A DNA stretch of 63,112 bases, filler included, from Hyphochytrium catenoides (taxonomy: Eukaryota > Protista > Hyphochytriomycota): assembly GCA_900088475.1 (NCBI GenBank). It is 6 parts of 6 records of this genome, joined end to end, with 100 filler letters (N's around TTAATTAATTAA, not from the genome) between each part and the next. Parts side by side here need not be neighbours in the genome. Positions count along the whole stretch, not along the records: positions 20,361 to 48,359 come from FLMG01002625.1; 5 more parts are not named here. One strand, given 5' to 3'. The position numbers and the translations under genes were made by a program. Below the pieces are notes generated by a model, which was not told the DNA's origin, searched no databases, and saw only the letters and a program-made list of their open reading frames with translations. How positions within the stretch are numbered: position 1 is the stretch's first letter; each line of letters starts with the position of its first letter. Of the stretch, positions 20,771 through 46,707 are shown one piece after another.

Positions 20771-21304
20771 GAGAGAAAGAAACGGAGGGAAGAGGCAGGG
20801 AAATAGAGTGAATGTATTTGTATATATAGAGCACAGCGAGTGTACTGGGAAACTTGCTAGCTAAATGGCTCAAGTGAGGAAGAAAGCGAGGCCAGAACCG
20901 AAGGCCTTGCGGCTGCCTGGTCTTGGAGCTAGCGGCCTGCCATGGAGTCTTTGAAGGTGCTCTGCTGGTTTTGAGGAAGTGAGGAGCGCGACCCGTTGCT
21001 TGGTCCACGGCAAAGTAAAGAACAGCGTACGAAGCTCCCGCTTGGCATAAAGACCAAATCGCCTCCGAAGAGAGAACTGAAGCCTATGAGCAGGAGGTTG
21101 AAGGGCGGTTTATAGGTCACTATCGCGCAGCAGAAGGACTGCGAGCCTTTAACAAAGAGAGAATGAGCGGCCAGTGTCAGCGGCCACGTCGTACGCTGAA
21201 GCCCTTCTAAGAGAGGGCATGTGGAAAGGGAGCAAACGCGAGGAAGAGGCAAAGTAGAAGGACAGATATCGAAAGCGAGGAAGGAAAGTGAAAGTCAAGG
21301 AAGG

Positions 21305-24300
21305 ATGTCGTCCGTTCCCGGAGGCCGTCGTGTGACAGCCACGGGGTCCATGCAGATCCTCAAGGTGAACTCTGTGGGCTCCAAATTGTCCATTCCTCTC
21401 TTGGTCCCGTCCTCGAGTAAGTCAACTGAAGGCCGTCTCAAGGCGATACAGCGCCGAGGAACGAGAGAAAACATTGCTCGGGATGTAGGGCGCCTTAACG
21501 CGGCAGGGCGGCGGCTTAGCGTGGACAGGATGCACATGGACCCTATCGTTGCGCTAGCAGAGAACTGTGTGAGCCTGATCTTGGAGAAGCTTAAACAACA
21601 CGCCACGCAGCTGCGGTACCAGCAACTCTTCAAGGACATTGTGGCCCAAGGAGAACTGGAAGGCTACACATTTCCTTCTGTTACTGAAGAGACCCGGCAG
21701 CCAGGGAAGCAGTTACCAGCGGACCAATACGTGGTCAAAGCGGGAGAGGTGCGGGACACACTGGAAAGCGTCACAAGGGCCCTAGCCGAGCGCTGCGGAC
21801 CTTCAGCGGTGGAATGCTTCTTTGGCGGCACGAAGAGAGTAGAGAGAGCGGAAGCAAAGGCTGACAGACGCTATGGCGGAGACCTTTCTGGAGTCTTAGA
21901 CTACGCCCGAACGTCTATTGTGTTAAAGGACTTAGCCAGCATCCGTGCGTGTGTCCAGGCCGCAGACGATTGGGCTCGACAGGACCCTTCCTGTCCTTTT
22001 ACCATTGCGCGTATAAAGTCACTCTTCTCAACGGAAGAGGAGGCTCTACCCGGAGGATACCGAGATGTGAAACTCAATCTAAAGATTCAAGAGCACATCT
22101 GTGAGGTGCAGCTGCATCTGCAGCCAATGTGGGCCGTGGCTGGTCAGGACGGCTATGGGCTCTACCAGGTCGTTGCCGGACAGGACGAAGATGGGAACCC
22201 GATCCTCCTGACCAGTGGCCTTGAGATCTTAGAGTCGAGTCTCATGACAGAGGAGACTCTGATGATGATGATGCAGATTGCCGCCCGCCGTGCTGAAGAA
22301 CCCACCATCCTTATCCCTGCAATTCTAGCGAGACAAGGAAAGGCAAAGGCTGCGATGGAAGAGTATCAGAAGGCGGTGGCTCACTATGAGGCCAAAGGAC
22401 AGCCAGACCATCCCACGGTGACGTGGTCTAAGAGAGGCATCACGGAGATCCTGCTTACACAGAATGAGAGCGAGGAGGCTGTGAAGCACGCGGCAACCTG
22501 CGTTGAACGTAGCTCCAAGCTGTATGGTCCGGAGCATCCAGAGACTACGTCCGACACCTTCCTCCTCGCCTCAGCAAATGCTAAGAACGCCAAGTTTGCG
22601 GAAGCTGAGAGGTGCTATCGCCAGGTGCTAGAGAGGCGCAGGGAGGTGTTGGGCGAGGAAGATGCTAAGACGCAAGAAGTAGAGTGCGAGCTAGCCGCGC
22701 TATTGGCACAGAAAAAGGAGCGGTCGGAAGAGGCAGAGACACTTTTTCGCAAGGTCCTCGCCAGCAGGGAAGATCGCCTGGGATCACGTCACGTCCTCAC
22801 TTTGGAGGCTGCAGGTCAGGTGGCCTTTATTTGCTCGACAAGGGGGAAGTATGCAGAGGCAGAGCCCATGTACACGCGCTGTATGGAGGGCTTTGAGGAG
22901 GCTTATGGTTCCTCGCACCCTCTGTACCTCACCTCCACCCTTAACCTGGCGAAGCTTCTGCAAGAACTTCGACGCTACGCGGAGGCCGCAAAGCTGTTTG
23001 AAAAAGTATTAGAGAGCTGTCGCACGCTCTACGGCCCAACGCACGAAGAGACTCTGATAGCGCAGAAGTGTCTTGGTATGTCACTGTACCGCTCCAAGCG
23101 GTATGAAGAGGCCGAGAAGCTCCTTCAAGGCACCCTCGAGGCTCGAGAGAAGTCATTAGGGAAAGATGATGAGCGTACGATCAGCACAATGGTAAGCCTC
23201 GGCAGCGTTCTAATCGACGCAGGCAAAGTCGATGAAGGCATCCAGCACCTCCGTCAGGCATTGGATCTCTATGCCCAAACCTTAGGCGAAGATAGCGCCG
23301 CTGTAGTGGATGTCCTACAACTTCTGGCAGGGACCCTGGAAGCGAACGGAGAGAGAGAACAAGCCTTAAAGTACTTCAAGAGAGCGCTTAATGCGGCAGA
23401 AAATGTCTCTGGGAAGGAATCTCATGACATCATTACCTTCAGCTCGGCGGTAGGACATTGCCTGACCTCTCTTGGCCGGTCTCGAGAGGCAGAGCCTCAT
23501 CTCCGGCGCGCGCTGGACCTCTCCTCTCGACTGCAAGGTAATCGCCACAAGGAGACACTATCGATCGAGAACGAGCTTGCGTCTGTTCTGGGTGCAGAGC
23601 TGAAGGTGGACGAAGCAATTGACCTTTATAAGGAGACGCTAGCGGGACGCTCAGAAGTCTGTGGGCCGAAAGACTTAGAAACGCTTTCCACAGCGTACAA
23701 CCTCGCCATTCTTTTGCATAAGACGGAGAAGCTGAAGGAAGCTGAGTCTCTGTACCAGCAAGCCATAACTGGATATGAAGAGATCCTCGGCCCCAAGCAC
23801 CCTCACACGCTAGATGCCGCTAATAACCTGGCATCTCTCTTTGCCGTCCAAGAAAACTATGCTGCCGCAGAGCCACTCTTCCGTCAAGCAGTGGCAGGAA
23901 GAGAAGAACAGCTTGGGAGCACTGACTCCTCAACTCTAGCCAGCTTCCACAGTCTCGGAAGCATGCTCTACAGGCAAGAGAAGTACAGCGAGGCAGTGCC
24001 CATACTGAAGAAGGGCTTTGACGGGCGAAAGCAGGTGCTGGGACAGGAAAACAGTCAGTTTCTCTCTACAATGTACTATTATGCCATGTCCATGGCGAGA
24101 CTGGGGGGTAAAGAGGCAGAGGCGACGGCTCTCTGCCGCGAATGCGTGGCCCTCATGCGTAAGAACCCTGCCACGATGAATGAAGACAGGGTGTTGGAAC
24201 TGGAAGAAGCCGCGCAGGAGCTGACGGCCAAGCTAAAGTGGCAACGCATCACGAGCATTTTTTGCTGCGCCGGTTCTCAGGCGCGGGTCAGCGTAGAGAC

Positions 24301-24310
24301 CGGTGCCTAA
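21305..24310 (+). CDS. RelA/SpoT-synthetase-like nucleotidyltransferase domain fused to about 15 kinesin-light-chain-type (42-aa) TPR repeats; single exon
   Basis: Uninterrupted ORF, first ATG at 21305. NTase motifs TKRVERAEAK..YGGD..V.DYARTSIV..IKSLF..GGYRDVKLN..ICEVQLH lie at about 21830-22120. From about 22320 there are repeats of A..L..G.Y.EAE.LY..AL..RE..LG..HP.TL with a 42-aa period. Confidence 0.85.
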   Translation: MSSVPGGRRVTATGSMQILKVNSVGSKLSIPLLVPSSSKSTEGRLKAIQRRGTRENIARDVGRLNAAGRRLSVDRMHMDPIVALAENCVSLILEKLKQHATQLRYQQLFKDIVAQGELEGYTFPSVTEETRQPGKQLPADQYVVKAGEVRDTLESVTRALAERCGPSAVECFFGGTKRVERAEAKADRRYGGDLSGVLDYARTSIVLKDLASIRACVQAADDWARQDPSCPFTIARIKSLFSTEEEALPGGYRDVKLNLKIQEHICEVQLHLQPMWAVAGQDGYGLYQVVAGQDEDGNPILLTSGLEILESSLMTEETLMMMMQIAARRAEEPTILIPAILARQGKAKAAMEEYQKAVAHYEAKGQPDHPTVTWSKRGITEILLTQNESEEAVKHAATCVERSSKLYGPEHPETTSDTFLLASANAKNAKFAEAERCYRQVLERRREVLGEEDAKTQEVECELAALLAQKKERSEEAETLFRKVLASREDRLGSRHVLTLEAAGQVAFICSTRGKYAEAEPMYTRCMEGFEEAYGSSHPLYLTSTLNLAKLLQELRRYAEAAKLFEKVLESCRTLYGPTHEETLIAQKCLGMSLYRSKRYEEAEKLLQGTLEAREKSLGKDDERTISTMVSLGSVLIDAGKVDEGIQHLRQALDLYAQTLGEDSAAVVDVLQLLAGTLEANGEREQALKYFKRALNAAENVSGKESHDIITFSSAVGHCLTSLGRSREAEPHLRRALDLSSRLQGNRHKETLSIENELASVLGAELKVDEAIDLYKETLAGRSEVCGPKDLETLSTAYNLAILLHKTEKLKEAESLYQQAITGYEEILGPKHPHTLDAANNLASLFAVQENYAAAEPLFRQAVAGREEQLGSTDSSTLASFHSLGSMLYRQEKYSEAVPILKKGFDGRKQVLGQENSQFLSTMYYYAMSMARLGGKEAEATALCRECVALMRKNPATMNEDRVLELEEAAQELTAKLKWQRITSIFCCAGSQARVSVETGA

Positions 24311-24836
24311 CGGGAGAAACACTAGAGAGAGGGAGAGAGCTATAGAGATGCTGCTCTCACTATGAGAGTCATATTTCTTTATTGAGATATATAGACTTTT
24401 TTTTCATGCGCGGTGCCTTATCCCACCGTCACGTCTCACGGTCATGAGGAAGCCAATCGGATGGCGGTTGGCAATGAAAGATGCGTTTGCAGCCATCATA
24501 GATCGGATCTGCCGATGACCGTTAAATGAAACCTCTAACTAGGCACCGGCGAACAAACATTGGGCCTTAAGATAGCATAGCTTATAGCCCTCTCCTACGA
24601 CGACAGTGAGCGCTTTCATAGGCCCGAACTAAATGAGCACGGCAGAGAGAAGTCTTAGATAGTACGAGAAAGGGTCAGGAAAAGCATGGCATGTGTTATC
24701 TTTAGTATTTTGACCTATTGCGAAGCACGTGCTGACTGCCCTGTGCTGGCGCACCTAGCATAGGTCAGCACTTTGTAAGCAGTGTTAGCTCTGAGGTGGT
24801 CGCATAGCCAAAGCAAACGCTGGACAAGCTAAGTTC

Positions 24837-26031
24837 TTATGCGGACAGTCCGAGAAGAAGGTTGCTGCCCTGAGAATTGGGAATGTATGTCACGTTCTTG
24901 GCCCGAGCAAGAGTATCAGCAATCTCCTTGGCAGCGTCAATTCTCTGAACCTCGATGTAGCCCAGCCCTGCATCTGCGAGGGCATCAGAAATGAGCTTTG
25001 CAGCCTCTGACTCTCCCTCAGCTCTAATGATCGCAGCCTAATGAAGACATAGGAGAGAGGGGGTTAACCTTGCTGAATCTTTTGCCGGAATAGTAGTTGA
25101 TAGTTCGACTTACTCTCTTCTCCTGCTCAGCCTTCATGACGACGAACTTTGATCTCTCAGCTTCCTGGTAAGCAACCTGCTTGGCCTCAATAGCTTGGGT
25201 AAACTCCGACCCGAAGGTCAGGTGAGTGATAGACACATCTGACATCAAGACCAGGTCAGATGCCGAAGACGGTTATGAGAGATGTCAAAGATCATTGAGC
25301 CCGGCGACAAGCGCTCTCAGTTAGGGTTACTCACCATCAAGGATCAGGTTGAAGTTTTCTGCTCGAGCCATGAGTTCCTCCCGGATCTGTCGTGAGACCT
25401 TCTCTCTCTGGGTAAGCAGCTGGTCTGCGTTATACTGAGCCTAGGGGCACATCGTCAGCGCTCGTGATCTAACTCTTATCGTCTTTCTACGGTGCTTACC
25501 ACCACAGCCTTTAGCACCTCATTTCCGAGAGAAGGCAGTACACGATCATCAAAATCTAGGCCGAGGGTCTGATAAATCTTTGCGAGAGCAACCTCCTCAG
25601 GACGGGATAGCACCCTCAGTGAGATGTTAACGTTCTGAAGATCCTTGGTTCCTGTTACTGAGCTAATAACGCGCGGTCTAGAGCGTACGTCCATGATGTT
25701 GGGGTACTGCCAAATAGCAACAAGAGTCACTTAGTAACGTGTTGCTTGGGCTGACGAGTCCCAACCAGGTGTTACCTGGATATAAGGGATCCGGAAGTGT
25801 GTTCCCTCTCCGACGCACTCAGGCAGAACTCCGCGGAACCTGTCAAAAATCACAGCTCTCTCACCTCCGTCCACTGCAAGCGCAATGGGCAGTATGAGTA
25901 ATAATGACAGTCGAGATCCAGTCCGGCGTTGGCTTACCATTGTATAAGCATTCCTGGACGGCAACAGTGCCAACACTGACTGCAACACCCGCAGCAGCGA
26001 CTCTATTTAGAAAGCTCACAACCTGTGACAT
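24837..26031 (-). CDS. PHB1: Prohibitin (SPFH family, PHB1-like), 6 exons
   Basis: Spliced translation [139 protein letters not shown], with GT-AG introns. Confidence 0.95.
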
Positions 26032-29202: not shown

Positions 29203-32200
29203 ATGTACGTCTTTCTAGCGGCATCGGCTATTCTGACTAGCGAGCCCGCTAGGGCTGCGCTGGAAGTTACCTTTGCCGAGCTTTCTGTACTGTTTGCCGA
29301 GCATACCTTCGCGGTCTTGCTGCTGGTAGCTGCTGCATCAGCCCTGTGTACCTATGTCTCCATGAGGTCGATGCTGATCACTTCCAACGCCAAGGAGAAG
29401 GGAGCAACAGGATGGGATGGACTGCCTGATGCGGAGAGCGTTCGAGTTGAGACTGCCGCTCTTTCGCCAACCGAAAAGAATGGTCGGTATGCGCAAAGTA
29501 CTAAGGGGAGACAGAGGCCGCAAAATGTCGGAATTCTGGCCATTGAGACGTACTTTCCATCTCAGTACGTGGCGCAGGAGGAGCTGGAAAAGGCAAACAG
29601 CGTTTCCAGCGGGAAGTATACCATAGGACTTGGGCAAGAAGCCATGGCATTCGTATCAGACAGAGAAGATATCAACTCCATCTGTCTCACGGCAGTGCAT
29701 AACCTGCTAGACAAGTATAACATCTCACCACTCTCCATCGGCCGCCTGGAAGTCGGGACGGAGTCGCTCGTTGATAAGAGCAAGTCAACCAAGACAGTGC
29801 TCATGGAACTCTTTCGAGAGAGCGGCAACACGGACGTCGAGGGCGTTACCTCTATCAACGCTTGTTATGGAGGCACTGCGGCGCTGTTGAACTCTGTTGC
29901 GTGGGTGGAAAGCAGCAGCTGGTGAGCAGAAGCCCTTTCTGTCTAGTTGGCTTCTCTCTTGGTTGACTTCTCTCTTACACTGATCATTCCTTTTCTCTTT
30001 ATCCAGGGACGGGCGTTATGCACTAGTTGTGGCTGGCGATATTGCTGTGTATGCTAAGGGACCAGCAAGGCCTACTGGAGGCTGTGGAGCCGTGGCGATG
30101 CTTGTAGGACCGAATGCTCCTATTGTTCTTGAGCCAGGGCTACGAACCACCCACGCTGCTCATGTCTGGGACTTCTTTAAGCCTGACATGAACTCTGAGT
30201 ACCCAGTAGTGGACGGACAGTTCTCGAACGCTTGCTATCTCACCTCGCTGGATGACTGCTACTCGCGCTTTGCTGCAAAGCATGAAGATCGTGGGTTGGA
30301 CGGCAAACGCTTCAAGATTTCAGACTATGACTTCGCTGTGTTCCATTCCCCGTATAACAAGCTGGTCCAGAAGTCCTTTGCGAGGGTAAGTCTCGAGGCG
30401 GCTTGCCTCTGACGTCTCTTCCACTCCTATCCCTAGGTCTCTCTCTGTCTCGATCTATATCTTGCTTCTTTGTTTAAAGCATTTGCTTAGCCCATCGGGA
30501 CACTGGCGGTTGTGCTGCATGAATGTCTTTCAAATGCAAGAGAAACAAGTGGGGACGATAAGGGTTGAAGTCCATTCTACACTGCTTCCCCCTTCTTCAT
30601 CCTCCACGCTTGAACTGCGCTTTTCCTCCGTCTACCTAAGCTTCTTCTTGTCAACTGAAGAAGCCCTTAGGCGAGCGCAGACAGCTTATTCTTCGTAGCG
30701 CCGCTGCAGCTTAGTCTTCTGGCATTGTAATGCCTCCACTCTGACCGCTTACCGCCTTCATCCGCGTTTCTTTTGCAGATTCTTTTCAACGACTTCCTGC
30801 GCGATCCCACCAACCCTGCATATGCTGGCCTTGAGAGGTTCTTGACGATGCCTCGTGAGAAGACGTACAATGATCGCGAGCTGGACCTGGAGCTACGGAA
30901 GCTGTCCACGGACTTGTACAGGAGGATGGTAGTGCCTTCCGTGAAGCTAAGCCAGCAAGTGGGCAATTGTTATACAGCGTCTGTCTTCAACAACCTTGTC
31001 TGCCTCATCGACGCTATGAAAGAGCAACTGCTGGGCAAGAGAATCGTCATGTTCTNNNNNNNNNNNNNNNNNNNTTCGTGATCGCGTCCATGACCGGAAT
31101 GACTATGCGTCGACGGAGCCAGTGGAGCTCCTCTTCCCAGGAACCTACTACCTTGTGAAGGTCTCTAAGAACTGGCATCGAATCTACAACCGAAAGCCGC
31201 TGACAGACCGGAAGCTCACCCTAGACCAGCTTCCACCTCATTCTCTTCCTGCCGCAGTTGACTTTTCTCACGAAGCAATCCCGGAGTTGGGGGTGAGTGT
31301 GCCGAGGCAATCGCAGGTCCGAACTGTCATCGCTGCAACTTCACTAGGCCTCCCTGGTGGCCAGCGAGTGTTTGCCCCTGAGAACCTTGATCGTCTTTTA
31401 AATGGGGACAACGCCATTGGCCATGTGACGACGGCTGAACAACAGCAAATGATTGAGATGTCGATTGTTCAGCTGAAGAAGACAAAGCAAGGAGCGCTCC
31501 GCTTGCCAGTCACTTCACATGAGCAGTGCATCAAGCTCGCAGGCCTCCTAGGACAATTCTCTCTAGACCAGGACTATGGCATCCCTAGGAATGTCGTGTT
31601 GGCCATGGAGGAGCCCTCTCAACTGGCGGTGGCTGCTGGTTTGGAAGCCATGAAGTCAGCTGGTCTGGTGGCTGGGGACATTGTGAACGGCTGGGGCAAC
31701 TGGCGGCTCCCTGACGGACTTAGGGACAGCACAGGCATCATCTTTGCCACGTCTTTCCCTTTACTCCAGACGGGTGTCAAGGAGGTAAAGCGCTTCATGG
31801 CCAAAGGGAGGCCAATGGAGAGTGACCGCCTGGTCGAGACGCTCAAGGAGCGGGCGCTGTTGGCGGGCTTCTCTGAGGACTCGGCAGAACTGTCCTTGCT
31901 TGAACAGCTGCGTTCTCTGCCTTCAGAGGAGGAGGATGCCTTTGAGTTTGATCGCAAGTTCCTCTTCCGGGTCCTAGTCCTTGCAAATGCACAGCTGGCG
32001 CAGATCACTGGCGCGCGTGGTCCTAATTCGCAGATCAACGCTGCTTGCAGTGGCACCACGCAGGCGCTTGGGATGGCACAGGACTGGCTACGCTCTGGCC
32101 GTGCTGAAAGGGTTGTTGTCATTGCGGCGGACGACGCTTCCTGTGCCGACCTCTTTCCTTGGATTGGTAGCGGTTTCCGCGCTCTGGGTGCCTCCTGTCT

Positions 32201-32867
32201 AGCGGGAGATGTTACTGATGGTGCGCTGCCATTTGATAAGAGGAGAAGCGGGATGATCCTAGGTGCAGGAGCCGTGGGCGTAGTTTTGGAGAGAGAGAGC
32301 GCTTTCAAGCAACGTATCAACGGTCTGTCTGCGACCACTGCAGCTGCTCTGGCGGGACCCAAGTGCGAGCTGGTGGCCTCTCGCTTCACCAACTCCTCCT
32401 ACCATGGAGCCGCAATGGACAAGGATCACATTGCCATGGAGCTTGAGGCGTTTCTGAAAGAACTAAAGGAGCGGCAGGGAATCACTAAGGAGATGCTGGC
32501 GACCGATGGCGTGTACTTCAGCCATGAGACATGCACCAACGCCGCTCCGCAGACTTCCTGCGCTTTCTCTGAAGTGTTTGCCCTGCACCAGGTATTTGGC
32601 GAGCCACTTGTGAGTCAACTGCTGATCGCCAACACGAAGGGCTTCACTGGCCATCCGATGTCCGTCTCTTTTGAGGACATCGCAGCGATTGAGGGACTAG
32701 TCCGCGGCCTGCTTCCGGCAGTAGTAAACTTTAAGGAACATGATGAGAATTTGGGGGTCAAGTTGAACCTCTGGCGTGGCGGTCCTTGCAAGAAGAAGTA
32801 TGCGCTGCGGTTTGCTGCAGGGTTTGGCAGCCAGTGCGCCTTCACATTCTACCGCGTCCAGGGCTAA
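29203..32867 (+). CDS. Fusion protein: hydrophobic N-terminus + HMG-CoA synthase + C-terminal beta-ketoacyl synthase (KS) domain
   Basis: HMGS exons 29203-29921, 30007-30385 and 30779- carry [16 protein letters not shown] (Glu), NACYGGT (Cys), ARPTGG, FHSPY (His) and GNCYTAS. After the N gap 31056-31074, one open frame carries the HMGS C-terminus ([12 protein letters not shown]) and continues into a KS: [12 protein letters not shown] (Cys), [22 protein letters not shown] (His), NTKGFTGH (His), AGFGSQ. Confidence 0.9.
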
Positions 32868-38647: not shown

Positions 38648-39296
38648 GAAGTTAAGGGAGCACAGGATAAGATAGAGCCCGAGGCTTGGAACCAGATGGG
38701 CAGCTAAGGCGATGGAACACTGGTCGCGCTCAGCCTCTGAAGAGTCCTTTCAGCCATCCCCCAGGTCCTGCTAGTCATAAGGATTAGGAATAATGACACA
38801 TTATCAACCACAATTTGCAATTTCTTCTGTAATATCATGAATGGACACCCGGAATGAATGTATGTAACGCCTTTGGTCTGGGTGCTGACGGAACGACCAC
38901 GCCCGGAGATCCTGGTGAGCTGCAGCCCGAGCCGAAGGCTGCAGGAGACAGCGTAAGGGCTGGTGCCCGTCCAATGCTCGGCACTAACAGCGTCTGCGAG
39001 CATCTCCGAGAGGTTTTGAAGAGCTAGTGGATCACGATAGAGACAGAACTAAGATAGGTGGGCGTCACGAGGAAAGCAGGCGACAATCAGGAGAGCGCTC
39101 TACCATGAGCCTGCCACTGGTCGCTGCGGTTTATCTCAGGTGCTGCTGGGGCGACATGTAAGAATGGCCCGATTGACACGTTCGAGGGGTAGGAATATCC
39201 TAAACAATCGCCGTAGAATGTTCCAGCTTGGTCGGTGGGTTGCGGGGTCGGGAGATTGGTAGTGCACAGCTAGCCCGACAGCTCCCAGCTAGAATC

Positions 39297-42200
39297 ATGC
39301 CGAGCGCGGAGGGTTTTGAGGAGGACCTGCCTCCAATGAGCTCAGGCGTGGATCCCTCCGTTGACTCTGCAAAGGTCTCTTTACGGTTGGACCATGCGGT
39401 TGGAATGCTGGACGATATGCCAGACTCTGCGGCTTTCATCGATGAACGCCGCGTAGTCTTTGCTGTAGGTAAACGCGCTGGGATCATTGATGTTGACTCA
39501 AAGATCACCCGCTGGCTTGAAACAGTGGGCACTTCCTCGAGCACCAGCAAGGGTGTGACGACACACAGCATCAGTGTGCAGCTCTGTGCAGTTAGACTTT
39601 GCCCAAAGCACCGCTATGTAGTCCTTGCCGAGCTGATTCAGGCTTACAAGGAGAAGAAGAACGGTCGAGGCGCAGGAGACTCTGGTGGGTCTTCGTCTTC
39701 CCTTTCTCTTGGTGACAGCGTGCTCAAGGGCTCCACTGGCGCTCTGCTGGAGGCTCAGGGTTCAGGGCAGTTAGACGTCTCTGGGAGGGAGGACTACTTT
39801 CTACTTTCATTCTTTGACCTCGGCAACCTGGCCACGCAATTTGAGCTCAAGTCGCCCCTGTTGCCCGTCAAGCGCTTGATTCAGCGAGGACACAAGGACA
39901 CTTCGGTCAGGGGACCGCTGAGCTCCATTGCCTTTAGCAGCGATAGCAAATTTCTTGTCACTCTTAGCAGCCCAAGCGATAACCTTCTCTGCATCTGGGA
40001 GTGGGGCCGCAGCCGCTTAGTTTGCGCTCATTTGTTGAACACTAAAATCCAGCGCGTCACCTTCAATCCTAAGGATAAAACCCAGATCGCCACGAGTGGG
40101 CCCCAGTCTTTGCAGGTCAGAGAGAATGCCTAAGACCTCTACTCTTGATCTGTTGTTCCGTTTCCATTGCACTCCCTCTCTCGCGTGCTGCTCGTCTCCA
40201 GTGCTAGCCCCTTATTGCATCTCATGCCGTCTACGGCAGCTCGCTGAGCATATGCTTGGCCTCCCTGTAACCTAACTCGCATTAGTTTGCCTGTCGGCTT
40301 CACCTCTTGTCTCGATGCGACCGCCTTTTACACTGCTCCGTCTATTTCCCCATCACCGTAGCTCTGGAGAGTGGCAGAAAGTTCGCTACGGCCGTTCCCG
40401 CCCTTTCGGCGGCTGCGGAGTGGAGACTCATACACAGACCAGAAATGGACGAGGGATGGCGTGATGGTGGCGTTAACCGAAGGTGGCGATGCCGTACTGA
40501 TGCAGGGCAGCGACCTGCTGCAGAGGTTCGAGAAGGTTCTAGGGAATGACACACCTGAGAACTTAGTGGTAAGACCATCTAAAGTTCCTCCTTCTCGTGG
40601 ATCGACCCTTTGCATCTCCTTTTGACTCGATCGGTAGCCACATACCTTCTTGCGCTTTGGCTCTCTGACCTTTGTACCCCAGCAGCCTCTCCCCGCTGCC
40701 ACTCGAACACTATGAGCTTCCTCTCACATACTACATCTCCGTCGTCCCAGCCTACCGACCAGGAGCTAATCATTTTCGGGGCTACGGGCACAATCGCCAT
40801 TCTCAGAAAGGAAAAGAGCGTTGAGCCGGTAAGAGTCCAACCTCTATACAGTGATCTATGAGGAAATGAGAGGTAGTAGGCTCCTAAGATAGCTGAACGG
40901 AGGAAAAGCGAGGATGAAAACAAAGAGAGCTGGGGAGAGAGACAGGGAGGGCTGACCACAAACCCGCAGTAGACGCTTTGCGACAAACCTGACAGTCTCC
41001 TCCGTTACCTTCGGTCCTAGATTTCCTATAAGGTGGTCAACACCTTGGCCCTCAACCATCGCGCTCGAATCTACTCAGCTACCATCTGCCCCCGACAAGA
41101 GACTCTTCTTCTTCTCTTCAAGGGACAGGCTGGCGTTGTATTGCTCTCTGCTCTCAACTCTATTCCCCCAGGAGACAAAGACAAGCCACTCGCCTTCCTT
41201 AGTCCTCTGGACCCTTGGCACCAAGCACCCGTCAGCTGTCTGTCTGTTTCCACCTGTAAAAGTCTGCTAGCTACTTGCACCAGTAGGGACGATGATACGA
41301 CCGTTAGAGTATGGAACTATCGGAAAAGAAGGCTCATCAGCGCCAGTGTGTTCAAGTCCAGACTCCCCGGCGTTAGCGACCCTTTCGGTCTGAAGAAAGG
41401 GCTAGAAGGAGCAGACAGAAAAGGAGAACGAAGCTCGTCGAGAAGAGAGCAGGACAACAACGGCGGTCCCTCCATCAGGCGTATTCCTCTGTCTGTTTCT
41501 TTCCATCCTGACGGGTACAAACTCCTCATCGGCTTCGCAGACGGCCTTCGACTCTACCACGTGTTAGCTGGCTCCACCCTCAAATCTCAAGCGCAGGCTT
41601 GGAGCAGCACCGATATCGAAGCGTCAACCCTCTCGCATCCTGCAATAACTCTGGAAGAGGACGAGCAAGGTGAGGCAGAGGGCATGGGGGCTGGACAGTA
41701 TGGCGAGGGAGGCCCTATCGCAGACGGAAAGGCGACCGCAAGAGACAAGGAAGGTCTCTCTTTAGCTTTGGAAGTCTCGAACAACTCTGTCCATTACGTT
41801 TCATTCTCTCCAGGCGGAAGCCTCTTCGTCACCCTAGAAACTGCGCCATCCTCTTTGTCAGCAGCCTCCTCTGGTCTTGACTCTCCAAAGAAGGCGGAGG
41901 GCCGTCCAACTCGTGCTTTTATCTATTCCTTTTTCGGAGCAGGGTGTGGGAGCAGCCCACGCCGTATGATGGAGCTCGTAGGACACCGAAGCGCTCTTTG
42001 TTGCCTATGCTGGCGTGGGATGGACCAAGGAGTCGTTGGTGCTGACAGAGCAGGCCGCATGTATGACTGGAGGATCGCTAGTGGGCTCGATGGACATGGC
42101 ACAGACGCCAGCACCCAAGGCGAAGCTCCAGGCCGGGAGGAGGATGACACCTTATGGGCCTTAGAAAGCGATAAAGGAGAGAGCAGCGTGTGTTCAAAGT

Positions 42201-45200
42201 CCTCTGTGCCCAAAGTCCGGCACAGTCAGGAGACCTACGAGAAGAACCTTCTCTTTTCAAGCTTGCAGGCGGCCTCAGATTCAGTTCTCGCTGCAGGAGA
42301 GAAGATCCAACCCATTTTGGCAAACTATGGCCATCGTCCAGGAACCGGCCCTTCCTCTCCTACCGCAGGCAGCCTCGGTCCTAGCTCTCCAACAGGCCAA
42401 AGAAGGAGGCAAAGCCTCATACCGGTCTCGGAGGGGAGGAGTTCCTCTCTCTTACTCAGCTGGACGAAGAACTTGGCCCAGCGAAGTGGTCTCTTCGTCG
42501 TTCCTGGGCCTCCCTTAAGCTCGTCCATTACAAGGATTCTGGTCAGCGATCAACAGCACCAAACACTTTTTGCTGCCACCAATGCCGGCAGTGTCCTACT
42601 ATTTGACTATCCACTGAAGATCGACACGAAACTAGGTGCGTTTATCTCTCTTCTCCCCTCGCGCTCTCCTTCTCTCTCTCTGTCTCTCTCTCTCCTTTTC
42701 TTATCAACCTGCCTCTCTTTCTTTTTCTCTTGCTCGTATCGTACCTCTCATAGTCTATCTCATAGTCTCCGTCTATCCACTGTCTGGCATCTTGTTCCTT
42801 GCTAAAGATACACTTTCCTCTTTCCAAACCTTCGGCTGTCTACTAAGCTCGTGCGTTTTCTCTACACCTCTAGGGCACTCCTTTCTCAGCCATTACTTCT
42901 CTTCTCACCTCGTTTCATGCTTTAAAAAGAACCTTTGTCTCACTCCTCCGATGTCCTGTTCGTTGTCCCTTGTCGGCTTCCTGCTGCTTCCTTCGCTTTC
43001 GCTGGCAGAGTTGACTTTGGATGGCGTGATAAAGCTTCATCCCAGGCAACAAATCATGCTCCACTCCCTTCCTATAACAGCGCTATCGCTATCCGGAGAC
43101 GGATCCTTTCTTCTATCCACTGGAGAGGATGGAGCAATATTCTGCTGTGAGATTGTCCGCCGGAGGGAAAAAGAGAGACACAGCGGAATTCAGAGAGAAA
43201 CAGACCGGGAAGAAAGGAAAGAACGCCTTCAGAGGCTCGCACAAGCTGAGGAAGATCGGCTGTGTCTCATCAACTCTGAGAGCTTCTCATCTGAGCGAGG
43301 GCAGCTGGCGCAACTTGCCCAGGAGTTAGCAGAATTGCGGTCATTGAGAGAATATGAGCTTCAGAGCCTAGTGCAGTCGCATCGCCTGGAGAAGGCAGAG
43401 ATGGAGGTCTCCTTTCTTGAGCAAATAAAGGAGAAGGACTTTCAAATAAGGTTAGGAAACCGGCAGGAGAGGGAGGACGAGAAAGAACTTGAAGAAGAGA
43501 GGAAGACGTGGGAAAGACAGAGAGATATGGCAGGATGTGACCTGGCACTGGGATGCGTCTCCTCAATGCTTTTCTCTTTCCCTTCCGGGTCCTCTCCCCT
43601 CTCTCTCACCCGAGTCTGTCTCTACTTTGTGACTTCAGCTAATGGTTATGTTCTTATGTTTCCTCTTTAGCGTTCTAGAGGAAAATCAGAAGCAGCTCAA
43701 AGCTAAGGCTGCGGAGGATCTTCAGCGGATGGAGGCCTCTCGACACGAGATGATTGGAGAGATGGAGAAGAGATTCGAGGCAGAGAAAACAAGGATCGCT
43801 CACGATCTAAAGAGAGAGCGAGAGCGGGCAGACGATATTCTCGTTCTGTCACAGGAGAAAGAGGAGGCTCTTGTTCTGGCTCGTAAGGAGGAAGAAGAGA
43901 AGCACAAGAAAGAAGTCCAGCAGCTAAAGCATCTCACAGTCCTGGAGAGGGAGAGTCTTGAAGCGTACGAAGACCATCTCTGTTTCTCCTCTTTCCTCTT
44001 TCTCTTCCTTCTCCCCTTGCCCTCTTCTTGAACACTGTCCTACAGCCCCTACTTCTCTTCCCAGCTCTTATGTCCTCTGTCAGCTCCATCGCTATTGTCT
44101 CCCTTAACGCTGACCATCTCTTCGCTTACTGTCTCTCACCCTCGGACCTTCAGATACGTGCTGGATATGAAGCGTGCAGCTGACAAGGCGTCTGAGCAGG
44201 AGGAAGAAGAGGCGAACGTTGTGATAGCTAGGCTGAAGGCTGAGATTCTGCAACAGAAGGAAGAGAGCCATAAGAAGGTAGGTAGTCTCTCCTCATTTCT
44301 GCCCCCCTTCTTGCTCTTTCGCTCTTTAGAGAGGGTAAAGTGCCAGCTCTCTCCTGGCTCCTCTTCCCTTCGCGCTTCGTGTGAGACACATATAAGTGTT
44401 CTGTGACATCGACGCCGTTCCTTACGCTAGGAGAACTCTTCCTGATTGCTGCTCACAGAGATTCGCTGTTTAATTGTCTAAAGTTCTTTTCACCTCTCTT
44501 TTCCGTCGTAGTCCCTCCTCTTTGCTTTTCTCTCTCTCTTCTCTTCTCTTCTCCCTCCTGTGCTGCTGTCACTCAGTTGCTCTTTGTGGGCACCTTCCCT
44601 GTTCTTGCTCTTCTTAATCATCTGTCCCGTTATCCACAGTTTCTGCACCAGGAGTATGAGAACACGCTGCTTCAGGATGCCGTGAGAGTGATGAAAGGGG
44701 AGCTTAAAACCAAAGAGGATGAGCTGAAGCGAGCAGCAATGTCTAAGGAGGCAGCTGAGGCTCAGAGGAGAGGACTAGAAGAGCAGCTCAACCTCATTCG
44801 CGAGGAGATGCAGGCTTTAGAGAGGAAGGATGAGCTTTTGAGAGAGCATGTTTGGAAAGAAAAGCAGTCTCGGGAAAGATTGGAGAAAGAGAGGAACATT
44901 TTGAACCATAAGGTAACGTTGCAGGCCCCTTCCAGGGCCATCTTCCTTCTGGGCACTTTATAAACTTCTAAGGTCCATTTAAAAGTCTCACAGCAAAGCG
45001 AGAGCATTGTCTTTCTCAGAGCCACATGTCCACTGCAATACGAACACGCCTCTACGAAAGCCTCTAAACGTTCTCACTGAGTGTGTCGCTCTCTTCGATT
45101 CCTTGCTGTGTCTCTGTCTGTCTGTCGCTCTCTCTTTTTCTGTTTTGCTTTCACTCCCTCGATCATCCTTTTCACTTTCTGACCTCATCGTTCATAGCTT

Positions 45201-46707
45201 GACGACATTCAAGGCACAATTCAACCTCGTGATGAGAAGATCAAGGACATGCTTCATACCTTTCAGGCGATGGACGAGGAGTGGATTAAGGTTTCTCACT
45301 CACTTCAGGCCAAAGATAGCGCACAGAACAAGAAGGAAGCTCAAGTTAGGGAGCTGCAGAGCCGTGTAAGAGAGCTTGAGGAGTCTCTGCTGCAGAGAGA
45401 AGCGCTGCTGGATAGGTTCCGCCTTGACCTCGACGATGTGGTGCATGAGCCCGACCAGCGTCATTGGAAGACAGCAATACTGGAGCTTCATAGAAAGTAA
45501 GACTTGACATCTCATTTCTTCCCCTTCTGTCTCTCCCTCTCTCTCTTCTCTCTCTCTCTCTCTCTTGCTCTCTCTCTCTGTCTTCTTGAATCGTCTCTCT
45601 GTTCCCTTGATTCTGCACTTTATCACCTTGCCGCAGTCTGAAGCCAATTCTGCTTTCCTTTAGTCGTTCATATCAGTCACTTCTTCATTGTGCTTCTTGT
45701 CTTCTGAGCTTAGTAAGACTACTGCGAGAGAGCGGTGGGGCGGAATCTCCGCCCTACAAGGGGCAGTGGCTCGCCTGCCTTGGTCCCTTATCCTCGCACC
45801 CCTTCTCATTCTCTCTCTCTCCCTTTCAATCGTTTCATACGGGGCCAACCCTACCTGTTACGCTCTCTGTAGGTATACCGACGCCAAGACAAACGCCCGC
45901 TTCTCTGCAATGAAGCGAGAAGAGGTGTCCCGGGCTAACGAGCTTTTGCGAAGCACGTCGTGCCTCAGAGACATGCTCAGCGTGCAGGATCGTGCCTTCA
46001 CAAAGGCAAAGGGTGTGCTGGAGCACAAGACACACACTTCAACGCTGGAGAATATGGCGCTTCTAGAGCAGCTGAATGCCCTGAACAAGGATAACCAGAC
46101 CCTCAACCAGCGGGTAAAGGCACTACAGAAGACGAAGGAGGAGCATCTACAGCCTGGTGTGAGGAGAGCTTCTGCCCTCGAGGAAAAGCGCCCAAAGACT
46201 GCAGGAGCCACACCTGGAAGTCGTGTTGCTCGTTCATCCTCACTCTTCACGCCACCACCTTCAAATGCACCTTCAAATGGCGAAGCTAACGTTCCTTTAG
46301 CCAGCGCGGCGGGTCCGGTCGGTGGGCCACAGAGTGAGGAGCCAAAAGTGCCACCAGAGGTCACTAGCTCTCAGTCTTCTACCTCGGACAAACCACAATG
46401 GACATATCTCACCCAGCAGGACAGCAAGACTCCACGAACCGTCTCCTCTACCAGGACACTCTCTAGACCTAAATCTGCCGCAGCCATGAGAAACCGTATG
46501 GCCAGCAGCCCAGCGGTGGTCGCTCCTGTTTCTGCCAGTCCAACACACGGCAAGTTGAACGCCTCTACCAGCAAGGTCGGGATGAGGTTACGGAGCTCTC
46601 TAATGCGGCGAGTGCAGGTCGAAGCAGCAAAAGACGAACCTGGTAGCACTGATAAGGAGCAGGCCCCGGACCCCGAGGTCCATCAGCCACTAGAGGCAGC
46701 GCAGTGA
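39297..46707 (+). CDS. CFAP57: Cilia- and flagella-associated protein 57 (WDR65/FAP57)-like: WD40 propellers + long coiled coil; multi-exon
   Basis: Family-typical segments AFSSDSKFL..LCIWEW..VTFNPKD..QIATSG, WHQAPVSCLSV..LLATC..VRVWNY, SVSFHPDG..LIGFADGLRL, HSLPITAL..D..FLLSTGEDG, NILNHK..IQPRDEKIKDM..MDEE, ENMALLEQLN. Could be a divergent paralogue. Confidence 0.8.

Follow-up and report, generated by a model that had tools for sequence, protein, structure and literature searches.

What is an enzyme domain of the kind that makes alarmones doing at the head of a long array of tetratricopeptide repeats (TPRs) in a protist, and what would it produce there? Alarmone chemistry, in the form of (p)ppGpp, (p)ppApp or tRNA pyrophosphorylation, is regarded as bacterial and plastid biology. 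To our knowledge, eukaryotes offer outside their plastids only the uncharacterised divRel proteins and the RelA_SpoT heads of fungal NLRs (NOD-like receptors, where NOD stands for the nucleotide-binding oligomerization domain). The gene considered here lies at positions 21305-24310 (+) of a stretch of 63,112 nucleotides from Hyphochytrium catenoides (GenBank assembly GCA_900088475.1), which joins six parts of this genome and which we call the window. A preliminary description of this DNA had proposed that the gene encodes an alarmone-synthetase-like enzyme fused directly to about 15 TPRs. Our analysis identifies the enzyme part as a genuine synthetase-fold domain of the RelA/SpoT homologs (RSHs). 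We put at roughly 0.7 the probability that the protein as a whole is a Tas1/Apk1-like RSH domain with 15 TPRs, transferring pyrophosphate to the 3'-OH of a purine under TPR control.

A synthetase-fold domain of the Tas1 type

Residues ~140-300 of the 1,001-residue protein, whose numbering is used throughout, are an RSH synthetase-fold domain of the Tas1/Apk1-like kind (residues 140-300; 21722..22204, +). Three lines of evidence carry this assignment, namely profile homology, the predicted fold and the conservation of catalytic residues. A word-indexed search gave four relatives, three of them eukaryotic-looking (one from MMETSP) and one bacterial-looking, 1,512 amino acids long and with the domain near its C-terminal end. 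A five-sequence profile matched Tas1 (6OX6) with an E value of 1e-8. When a profile of a 61-sequence family alignment was compared with the PDB, Tas1 again came first (2.2e-14), followed by YwaC/SAS2 of Bacillus subtilis (8.3e-7), RelSeq (2.7e-5) and RelA (1.8e-4), and then by Rel, RelP and SAS1. The E value of Tas1 is at least seven orders of magnitude better than that of the next solved RSH. By profile score, the closest solved relative is therefore the (p)ppApp-making toxin Tas1/Apk1 and not a housekeeping (p)ppGpp synthetase. Weak matches to PF04607 were found in 32 of the 61 family members, with a best E value of 1.9e-7.

The predicted fold agrees with the profiles. An AlphaFold2 model of residues 130-310, computed on the 61-sequence alignment, had a predicted local distance difference test (pLDDT) score of 86.7 and a predicted template modelling (pTM) score of 0.80. 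The best 50 matches of this model in a Foldseek comparison with the PDB were all RSH synthetase domains (Tas1, RelSeq, SAS1/2, RelP, SpoT and CapRel). A VIA search of 48,161 representative chains, which does not depend on Foldseek, placed SAS2 (Z 13.7), RelP (13.6), SAS1 (13.4), Tas1 (13.3), CapRel (12.3) and Rel (12.1) at the top. Nine RSH entries had Z scores between 13.7 and 10, while other nucleotidyltransferase folds (RsfS, TENT5, cGAS-like and pol X) stayed at 9.5 or below. The model thus has the RelA/SpoT fold on which the preliminary description depended.

The residues expected of an active enzyme are in place. K177, K185, D199, K238, G251, Y252, R253, H264 and E267 are invariant in the 61-sequence alignment, in eukaryotic and bacterial members alike, and R202, D254, N258, Q269 and H271 are conserved in at least 90% of the sequences; conservation of the catalytic residues among homologs had been anticipated and holds. 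In the HMMER alignment to RelSeq, K177, K185, D199, R202 and K238 correspond to K243, K251, D264, R269 and K297, and Y252, E267 and Q269 to Y308, E323 and Q325. We take these RelSeq positions, from the roles given in the RSH literature, to be ATP-phosphate, Mg2+, donor-base, acceptor-base and catalytic sites. The equivalent FaRel2 residues are R64, K66, S70, K74, R77, D90 and Y128 (PMC11782079).

The four synthetase motifs occur in the order that had been reported from the sequence, at residues 176, 199, 250 and 265, and align to the Syn motifs of solved RSHs. The Syn1-type basic helix TKRVERAEAK (residues 176-185; 21830..21859, +), with K177, R181 and K185 as predicted ATP-phosphate ligands, aligns with IKSRERAMQK of Tas1. 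In the Syn2 strand DYARTSIV (residues 199-206; 21899..21922, +), which aligns with D-L-A-R of Tas1, D199 is the predicted Mg2+ ligand and R202 is predicted to stack on the donor adenine. GGYRDVKLN forms Syn3 and the end of the G-loop (residues 250-258; 22052..22078, +) and includes G251, R253, D254 and N258 together with Y252, the counterpart of RelSeq Y308, which is predicted to stack on the acceptor base. The Syn4 strand (residues 264-271, with ICEVQLH from residue 265; 22094..22117, +) holds H264, Q269, H271 and the predicted catalytic Glu, E267. Throughout its first half the domain follows the Tas1-type variant, with P/G-x-K for R-x-K, K-x3-R-A-x2-K, Y-x-G-D and D-x-A-R.

Fifteen repeats and an N-terminal extension

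After the enzyme domain and a gap of some 30 residues come fifteen TPRs of the TPR_10/TPR_12, kinesin-light-chain/NPHP3 type (residues 331-960; 22295..24184, +). Pfam matches over residues ~340-960 were to TPR_12 (5e-106, in 11 stretches), TPR_10 (2e-82) and TPR_NPHP3 (6e-42). Each unit is exactly 42 residues long, and the units follow one another in perfect register from residue 331, with no indel and with the consensus TL..LA.LL..EEAE.L..L..RE..LG. They are mutually divergent, as expected of an old array that has not been homogenised recently. The repeat count and length given in the preliminary description are thereby confirmed, as is its statement that no NB-ARC or NACHT domain stands between enzyme and repeats: Pfam identified no NACHT, NB-ARC, HD, TGS or ACT domain in the protein. 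Since TPRs are its only Pfam matches, it also has no delivery module (PAAR/Rhs, LXG or extracellular contractile injection system [eCIS]). Pfam gave no Zn-finger-like family after the enzyme domain, a region that is helical TPR, and NCBIfam returned TPR families only. The linker (residues 301-330; 22205..22294, +) is short and predicted to be helical, without P-loop, NOD or Pfam family. The AlphaFold2 helix at its start (model positions 170-180, residues 299-309) is of low confidence, with block means of 59 and 41, and residues 311-330 lie outside the model. A predicted complex of the enzyme domain (residues 125-312) with the TPRs (residues 325-965) scored 0.00, which speaks neither for nor against docking. 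The TPR solenoid is presumed to bind a protein ligand or to have a regulatory role.

The domain is preceded by an N-terminal extension (residues 1-75; 21305..21529, +) and a predicted helical lead-in (residues 76-139; 21530..21721, +). The extension is basic and Ser/Thr-rich (composition R11 K4 D2 E2 S11 T4), with 15 basic residues against 4 acidic ones and 15 Ser/Thr, and its first 40 residues are free of acidic ones. It could be a mitochondrial-type presequence, which it resembles, or a disordered regulatory tail, and a mitochondrial location is possible. The protein had been inferred to be cytosolic and described as having no signal or plastid-targeting peptide. No hydrophobic signal peptide was seen at the N terminus, and that part of the description stands; the absence of any targeting peptide is not secure, and because the first 75 residues are basic, Ser/Thr-rich and constrained (five synonymous and no non-synonymous variants over residues 5-65), a cytosolic location is not established. 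The lead-in is poorly conserved relative to diatom-like homologs, and only its residues 130-139 fall within the AlphaFold2 model, where the first helix begins at model residue 10 (residue 139). At the other end of the protein, the C-terminal tail (residues 961-1001; 24185..24307, +) has a CC pair near its end in the translation and no family match.

An intact gene under strong constraint

The listing of open reading frames (ORFs) in the window contains a 1,029-codon open frame at 21221-24310 (+). An in-frame TGA occupies 21197-21199; past it, the frame has its first ATG at 21305 and its stop codon at 24308-24310. Together with the variants described below, and with an independent contig that runs across the whole, this delimits a complete single-exon coding sequence of 1,001 codons plus stop (21305..24310, +). 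The comparison contigs were Logan assemblies of three runs (X1 to X3) of the same organism, all from one study and from two samples, so that the sample of genomes is small. A single 4.8-kb contig of run X1 covers the entire ORF with 25 substitutions and no indel in frame. When the three runs are pooled, 28 variants fall in the frame, 27 of them synonymous, and the ratio of non-synonymous to synonymous polymorphism (pN/pS) is ~0.01. The sole non-synonymous variant, A429G, lies within the TPRs and is the only change in the 630 TPR residues. Four variants immediately upstream of 21305 are at codon positions 1 or 2 of the ORF frame, which fits a translation start at 21305.

This is a genuine coding sequence under strong constraint, and no assembly artifact accounts for the join of domain and TPRs, since the X1 contig crosses the whole without indels and the variants are synonymous by 27 to 1. 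Two trivial origins were considered and dismissed: a chimera at the junction is ruled out by the independently assembled X1 contig, and a bacterial contaminant by the neighboring genes, which are eukaryotic and of which at least one has an intron. We predict a functional gene without introns at 21305-24310, in a gene-dense eukaryote that is probably a non-photosynthetic stramenopile. Over 21000-24600, the window differs from the contigs of the three runs by ~0.7% substitutions, which may reflect allelic heterozygosity or different isolates and provides a ready-made sample of polymorphism.

A deep eukaryotic branch and old paralogs

A profile search of 1.84 billion cluster representatives retrieved 5,138 proteins at E values up to 1e-3, and 1,782 at 1e-10. 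Many family members carry the domain at the C terminus of proteins of 1,000-4,300 amino acids. The maximum-likelihood tree of 67 domain sequences has two groups. The first (support 100/99) comprises 34 sequences, and the architectures examined in it are those of bacterial secreted toxins. P0004, for instance, has a coiled coil and transmembrane segments before a C-terminal domain, and P0010 (3,127 amino acids) combines eCIS_core (DUF4157), the Tas1-like domain at residues 2620-2763 and a C-terminal calpain-type peptidase. The latter looks like a two-warhead effector of a contractile injection system. The bacterial relatives weakly match a MuF-type head-morphogenesis family in PHROGs, in which the domain of the window protein has no match, and PADLOC matched the window protein by a TPR model only, not in the enzyme domain.

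The second group contains 24 diatom-like sequences and the seven testable copies from the H. catenoides genome. One diatom-like cluster holds a Discostella protein and the ESM Atlas neighbors are mostly Bacillariophyta, taxon labels being largely missing so that the eukaryotic clade rests on few labeled members. The diatom-like clade has the window copy as its sister (99/90), and the remaining copies make up a basal grade of low resolution. Their branches are long, at 0.9-3 substitutions per site, which indicates that the paralogs are old. On this tree, the copies of this genome branch deeply within a eukaryotic (diatom-like) clade, whose sister group consists of the domains of bacterial secreted toxins. 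The fusion to TPRs is rare in databases: among the top 150 relatives, only P0124, from metagenomes, also joins the domain with TPR_12. The diatom-like homologs tested had no Pfam domain at all. A TPR remnant after their domain was considered and rejected, the three weak matches (E values of 0.014-0.13) not being significant.

Six-frame searches of the genome (G000; 61 Mb in 4,759 contigs) revealed the domain at eight or more further loci (C3807, C1183, C2692, C1721, C1414, C1106, C3618 and C2423), hence at least nine with the copy in the window, which answers the call for a paralog count. TPR matches occur in the same or downstream frames at 6 of the 8 further loci, and the paralogs do not share the N-terminal extension. 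The copies on C1721 (6301-6684) and C1414 (3146-3478), in L010 and L011, are sister paralogs (100/98) with intact catalytic motifs, and their C-terminal region is long, helical and unmatched by the TPR model. Here the same enzyme head has a different tail. The copy on C1106 (17583-17783; L012:3412-7737) lies in a 1,442-codon frame; its GYRD motif is lost, as is the Gln of E-x-Q. Glu/Ser/Arg-rich low-complexity inserts interrupt its domain, TPR-like repeats are kept downstream, and the product is likely to be inactive. TPR genes of the window type are only a handful in the genome. Contig C666 carries a further TPR_12 gene without an RSH-like domain in its vicinity, so the arrays are not exclusively tied to the enzyme domain. 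PF04607 and HD_4 (PF13328) had no six-frame match in the genome, a result limited by introns and incompleteness, while the controls gave matches in 11 and 10 of 14 genomes. Judging from these searches, canonical alarmone synthetases and hydrolases seem to be missing from this organism with its synthetase domains of the toxin type.

Proposed function and its alternatives

From these features we infer an activity, an acceptor, a mode of TPR regulation and a biological role. ATP-Mg2+ would be held by K177, R181, K185, D199 and R202. With the help of E267 and Q269, its beta,gamma-pyrophosphate would be passed to a purine substrate, at the 3'-OH, while Y252 stacks on this substrate. The TPR solenoid would hold the enzyme, or release it, upon encountering a protein partner, and the output would be a burst of growth-arresting nucleotide.

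Several observations weigh against this proposal. Taken alone, the N-terminal 350 or 220 residues match nothing in Pfam at E values up to 10, nor any PDB sequence. The PF04607 search suggested at the outset thus came back empty for the window sequence, and the homology of the domain is visible through family profiles only. The canonical Arg of R-x-K is missing, as it is in Tas1. The second half of the domain has a signature of its own, GGYRD...N followed by H-x-C-E-x-Q-x-H, whereas Tas1 has GYSGV and GEIQVN and canonical enzymes have GYxSxH and EIQIRT. A search for RNA runs containing the gene found none. Neither a hydrolase nor an immunity partner was detected, which makes a reversible signal harder to picture. 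Finally, the strong purifying selection on the TPRs disfavors a sensor engaged in an arms race.

The nature of the acceptor has to be considered in the light of what related enzymes do. Tas1/Apk1 makes (p)ppApp and depletes ATP, as does FaRel, whereas CapRel, FaRel2 and PhRel2 pyrophosphorylate the CCA end of tRNA, and the enzymes that use tRNA cannot be told apart by any signature in their sequence (10.1101/2021.04.30.441581; PMC11782079). The Apk1-like family also includes exported enzymes that prefer guanine or are promiscuous (PMC12691689). Because the second half of our domain differs from both Tas1 and the canonical RSHs, and because acceptor choice varies within the clade, the acceptor is not readable from the sequence. 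The label of alarmone synthetase given in the preliminary description holds for the fold, and the closest solved relative is a toxin. The most likely ranking places an adenine nucleotide first, with (pp)pApp as the product, since the closest solved relative makes (p)ppApp; a guanine nucleotide comes second and an RNA 3' end third. The invariant basic residues near Y252 would suit a pocket for nucleotide phosphates better than the use of tRNA.

The alternative that survives best, although we still find it doubtful, is that the protein is an NLR-like sensor-effector of immunity or allorecognition without a NOD, whose TPRs would recognize a viral or non-self protein and release a suicidal nucleotide toxin; a role in immunity had been proposed in the preliminary description. 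Much of what we found is compatible with it: the family is multi-copy in this genome and there is no detected hydrolase to reverse the product. The repeats are of the TPR_10/12 type, which is the one associated with NB-ARC in fungal NLRs. Diversifying selection is typical of NLR-type sensors. Here we found the reverse: the repeats have one change in 630 residues in a frame where variants are synonymous by 27 to 1, and they are divergent rather than homogenized. The paralogs are ancient, with no recent expansion, such TPR genes are few, and the enzyme domain has no PADLOC match. In fungi, RelA_SpoT domains are N-terminal effectors of NACHT or NB-ARC NLRs with WD, ANK or TPR sensors (PMC4986451, PMC12258605), and the bacterial relatives of our domain are secreted toxins (PMC12691689), but the absence of a NOD sets the window protein apart from the fungal receptors.

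A somewhat less probable alternative, which we regard as unlikely, concerns the substrate. The enzyme could be a pyrophosphokinase of RNA 3' ends (tRNA CCA) like CapRel, FaRel2 and PhRel2, stopping translation without making a free nucleotide. In structure, CapRel is one of the best matches (Z 12.3 in VIA; 4e-5 in Foldseek), the toxic small alarmone synthetases (toxSASs) that target tRNA have no clear sequence signature (10.1101/2021.04.30.441581), and CapRelSJ46 is likewise a single-chain fusion of a sensor and a toxSAS (PMC11782079). Yet the sequence kinship to Tas1 (2e-14) is far stronger than to any other solved RSH, and we identified no N-terminal basic extension homologous to the tRNA-binding one of FaRel2. 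K238, R253 and H264 would moreover fit the positive acceptor patch of alarmone synthetases, which is reduced in FaRel2 (PMC11782079).

It is improbable, to a greater degree, that the protein is a mitochondrial or otherwise organelle-directed (p)ppGpp synthetase, or a housekeeping one, with the TPRs providing a scaffold to which chaperones or further conserved partners would attach. The basic, Ser/Thr-rich and acid-poor residues 1-75 are under purifying selection and the whole protein is very strongly constrained, as such a role would have it. In addition, some enzymes of the Tas1 clade prefer guanine acceptors (PMC12691689), and it is a long-standing suspicion that the divergent small alarmone synthetases found in diatoms, fungi and Dictyostelium make ppGpp (PMC3153485). 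Against this, the paralogs lack the N-terminal extension, the genome yielded no RSH hydrolase, and the nearest characterized relative is an ATP-depleting toxin. It is very improbable that the protein is a TPR scaffold in which a pseudo-enzyme without catalytic activity is retained as a structural or nucleotide-binding module, because although the losses in the C1106 paralog indicate that the family can degenerate, the window copy keeps every residue at the catalytic and substrate-binding positions of RSHs, and these are near-invariant in the 61 sequences across both clades.

Neighboring genes in the window

The genes around the TPR fusion are ordinary eukaryotic ones, including a prohibitin, an aconitase-family gene and a WD-repeat gene. 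At 25476-25988 (-), two adjoining prohibitin-like (band-7) ORFs are separated by an intron of ~80 nucleotides beginning with GT, as read from the translation; Pfam gave no score for the 83-residue prohibitin-like piece. An HMG-CoA synthase (HMG_CoA_synt_N, E value of 1.5e-63) is followed by a ketoacyl-synthase-like ORF at 29203-32867 (+). Relatives of 950-1,000 amino acids with 45-50% identity have both parts in one protein in oomycetes (Phytophthora, Aphanomyces and Thraustotheca) and diatoms, and the two ORFs are probably one multi-exon fusion gene. These matches hint at a stramenopile; a Toxoplasma-like coccidian affinity was considered and dropped. Further on, at 39228-46707 (+), one or more multi-exon genes contain pieces of WD40/EML/POC16-like beta-propellers and then long coiled coils. 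Their product may be associated with cilia or centrioles, and this would agree with a flagellate stage in the life cycle. Long (CT)n/(GA)n microsatellites flank the genes of the contig (20361-20480, 20700-20790 and many other places) and account for the SLSLSL runs in many spurious ORFs.

Relation to known systems and implications

The protein shares features with several known systems and coincides with none. Tas1/Apk1, a type VI secretion system toxin of Pseudomonas aeruginosa with bacterial relatives known as exported alarmone synthetases, is like it in being the best profile match, with a VIA Z score of 13.3, and in sharing the first-half motifs as well as G-Y and E-x-Q. In many of the family's bacterial members the domain is at the C-terminal end of very long secreted proteins. 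The window protein differs in its eukaryotic host, in having neither secretion module nor immunity gene, in the position of the domain N-terminal to TPRs and in its own second-half signature. The RelA_SpoT effectors of fungal NLRs (Dyrka et al. 2014, PMC4986451; PMC12258605) resemble it as eukaryotic, non-plastid RSH-type domains, presumed to be enzymatic effectors, that precede a repeat sensor (WD, ANK or TPR_10), the likeness of the domains themselves being at the superfamily level. Fungal NLRs have a central NACHT or NB-ARC NOD and are detectable with PF04607, neither of which applies to the window protein, and in many cases their repeats closely resemble one another and are under positive selection, whereas the window TPRs are divergent and constrained.

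The divRel proteins (Atkinson et al. 2011, PMC3153485), unplaced divergent small synthetases from diatoms, fungi and Dictyostelium that are compared here by description only, are eukaryotic single synthetase domains with no hydrolase, and the nearest relatives of the window protein are diatom-like; unlike it, they are not described with TPR arrays. CapRelSJ46 (PDB 7ZTB; Z 12.3) also unites an RSH toxin-type domain and a C-terminal regulatory or sensing module in one polypeptide, but this module is a small pseudo-Zn-finger, the reaction is tRNA pyrophosphorylation and the protein is bacterial or phage-borne. The plastid RSH1-4 and CRSH and the bacterial Rel, RelA and SpoT have the same catalytic fold and aligned catalytic residues, together with HD, TGS, ACT or EF-hand domains and matches to PF04607 that the window protein lacks.

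The divRel proteins of eukaryotes (PMC3153485) and the RelA_SpoT heads of fungal NLRs were already known, and the Apk1/Tas1 family had been surveyed in bacteria only. New are a eukaryotic branch that can be assigned to the Tas1-like clade, a protein without NOD whose enzyme domain is fused directly to a long array of kinesin-light-chain-type TPRs, the multiplication of the family in one genome without canonical RSH enzymes, and direct evidence of strong constraint. It is conceivable, though unlikely, that a lineage of heterotrophic stramenopile-like protists, and possibly diatoms, has an alarmone or toxic-nucleotide system of Tas1-like pyrophosphokinases switched directly by TPR sensors without a NOD or an RSH hydrolase, either as a single-chain abortive-infection or suicide device like CapRel or, if the basic N terminus is a presequence, for mitochondrial (pp)pApp/(p)ppGpp signaling. 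The gene is a clean, intact and strongly constrained case in which a protein-binding solenoid is coupled to a domain of the Tas1 type. It raises the questions of whether eukaryotes make and use such nucleotides, of which acceptor is involved, and of how a toxin-type enzyme stays silent without an immunity protein. The Tas1-like family, with its 5,138 cluster representatives, has a deep eukaryotic branch.

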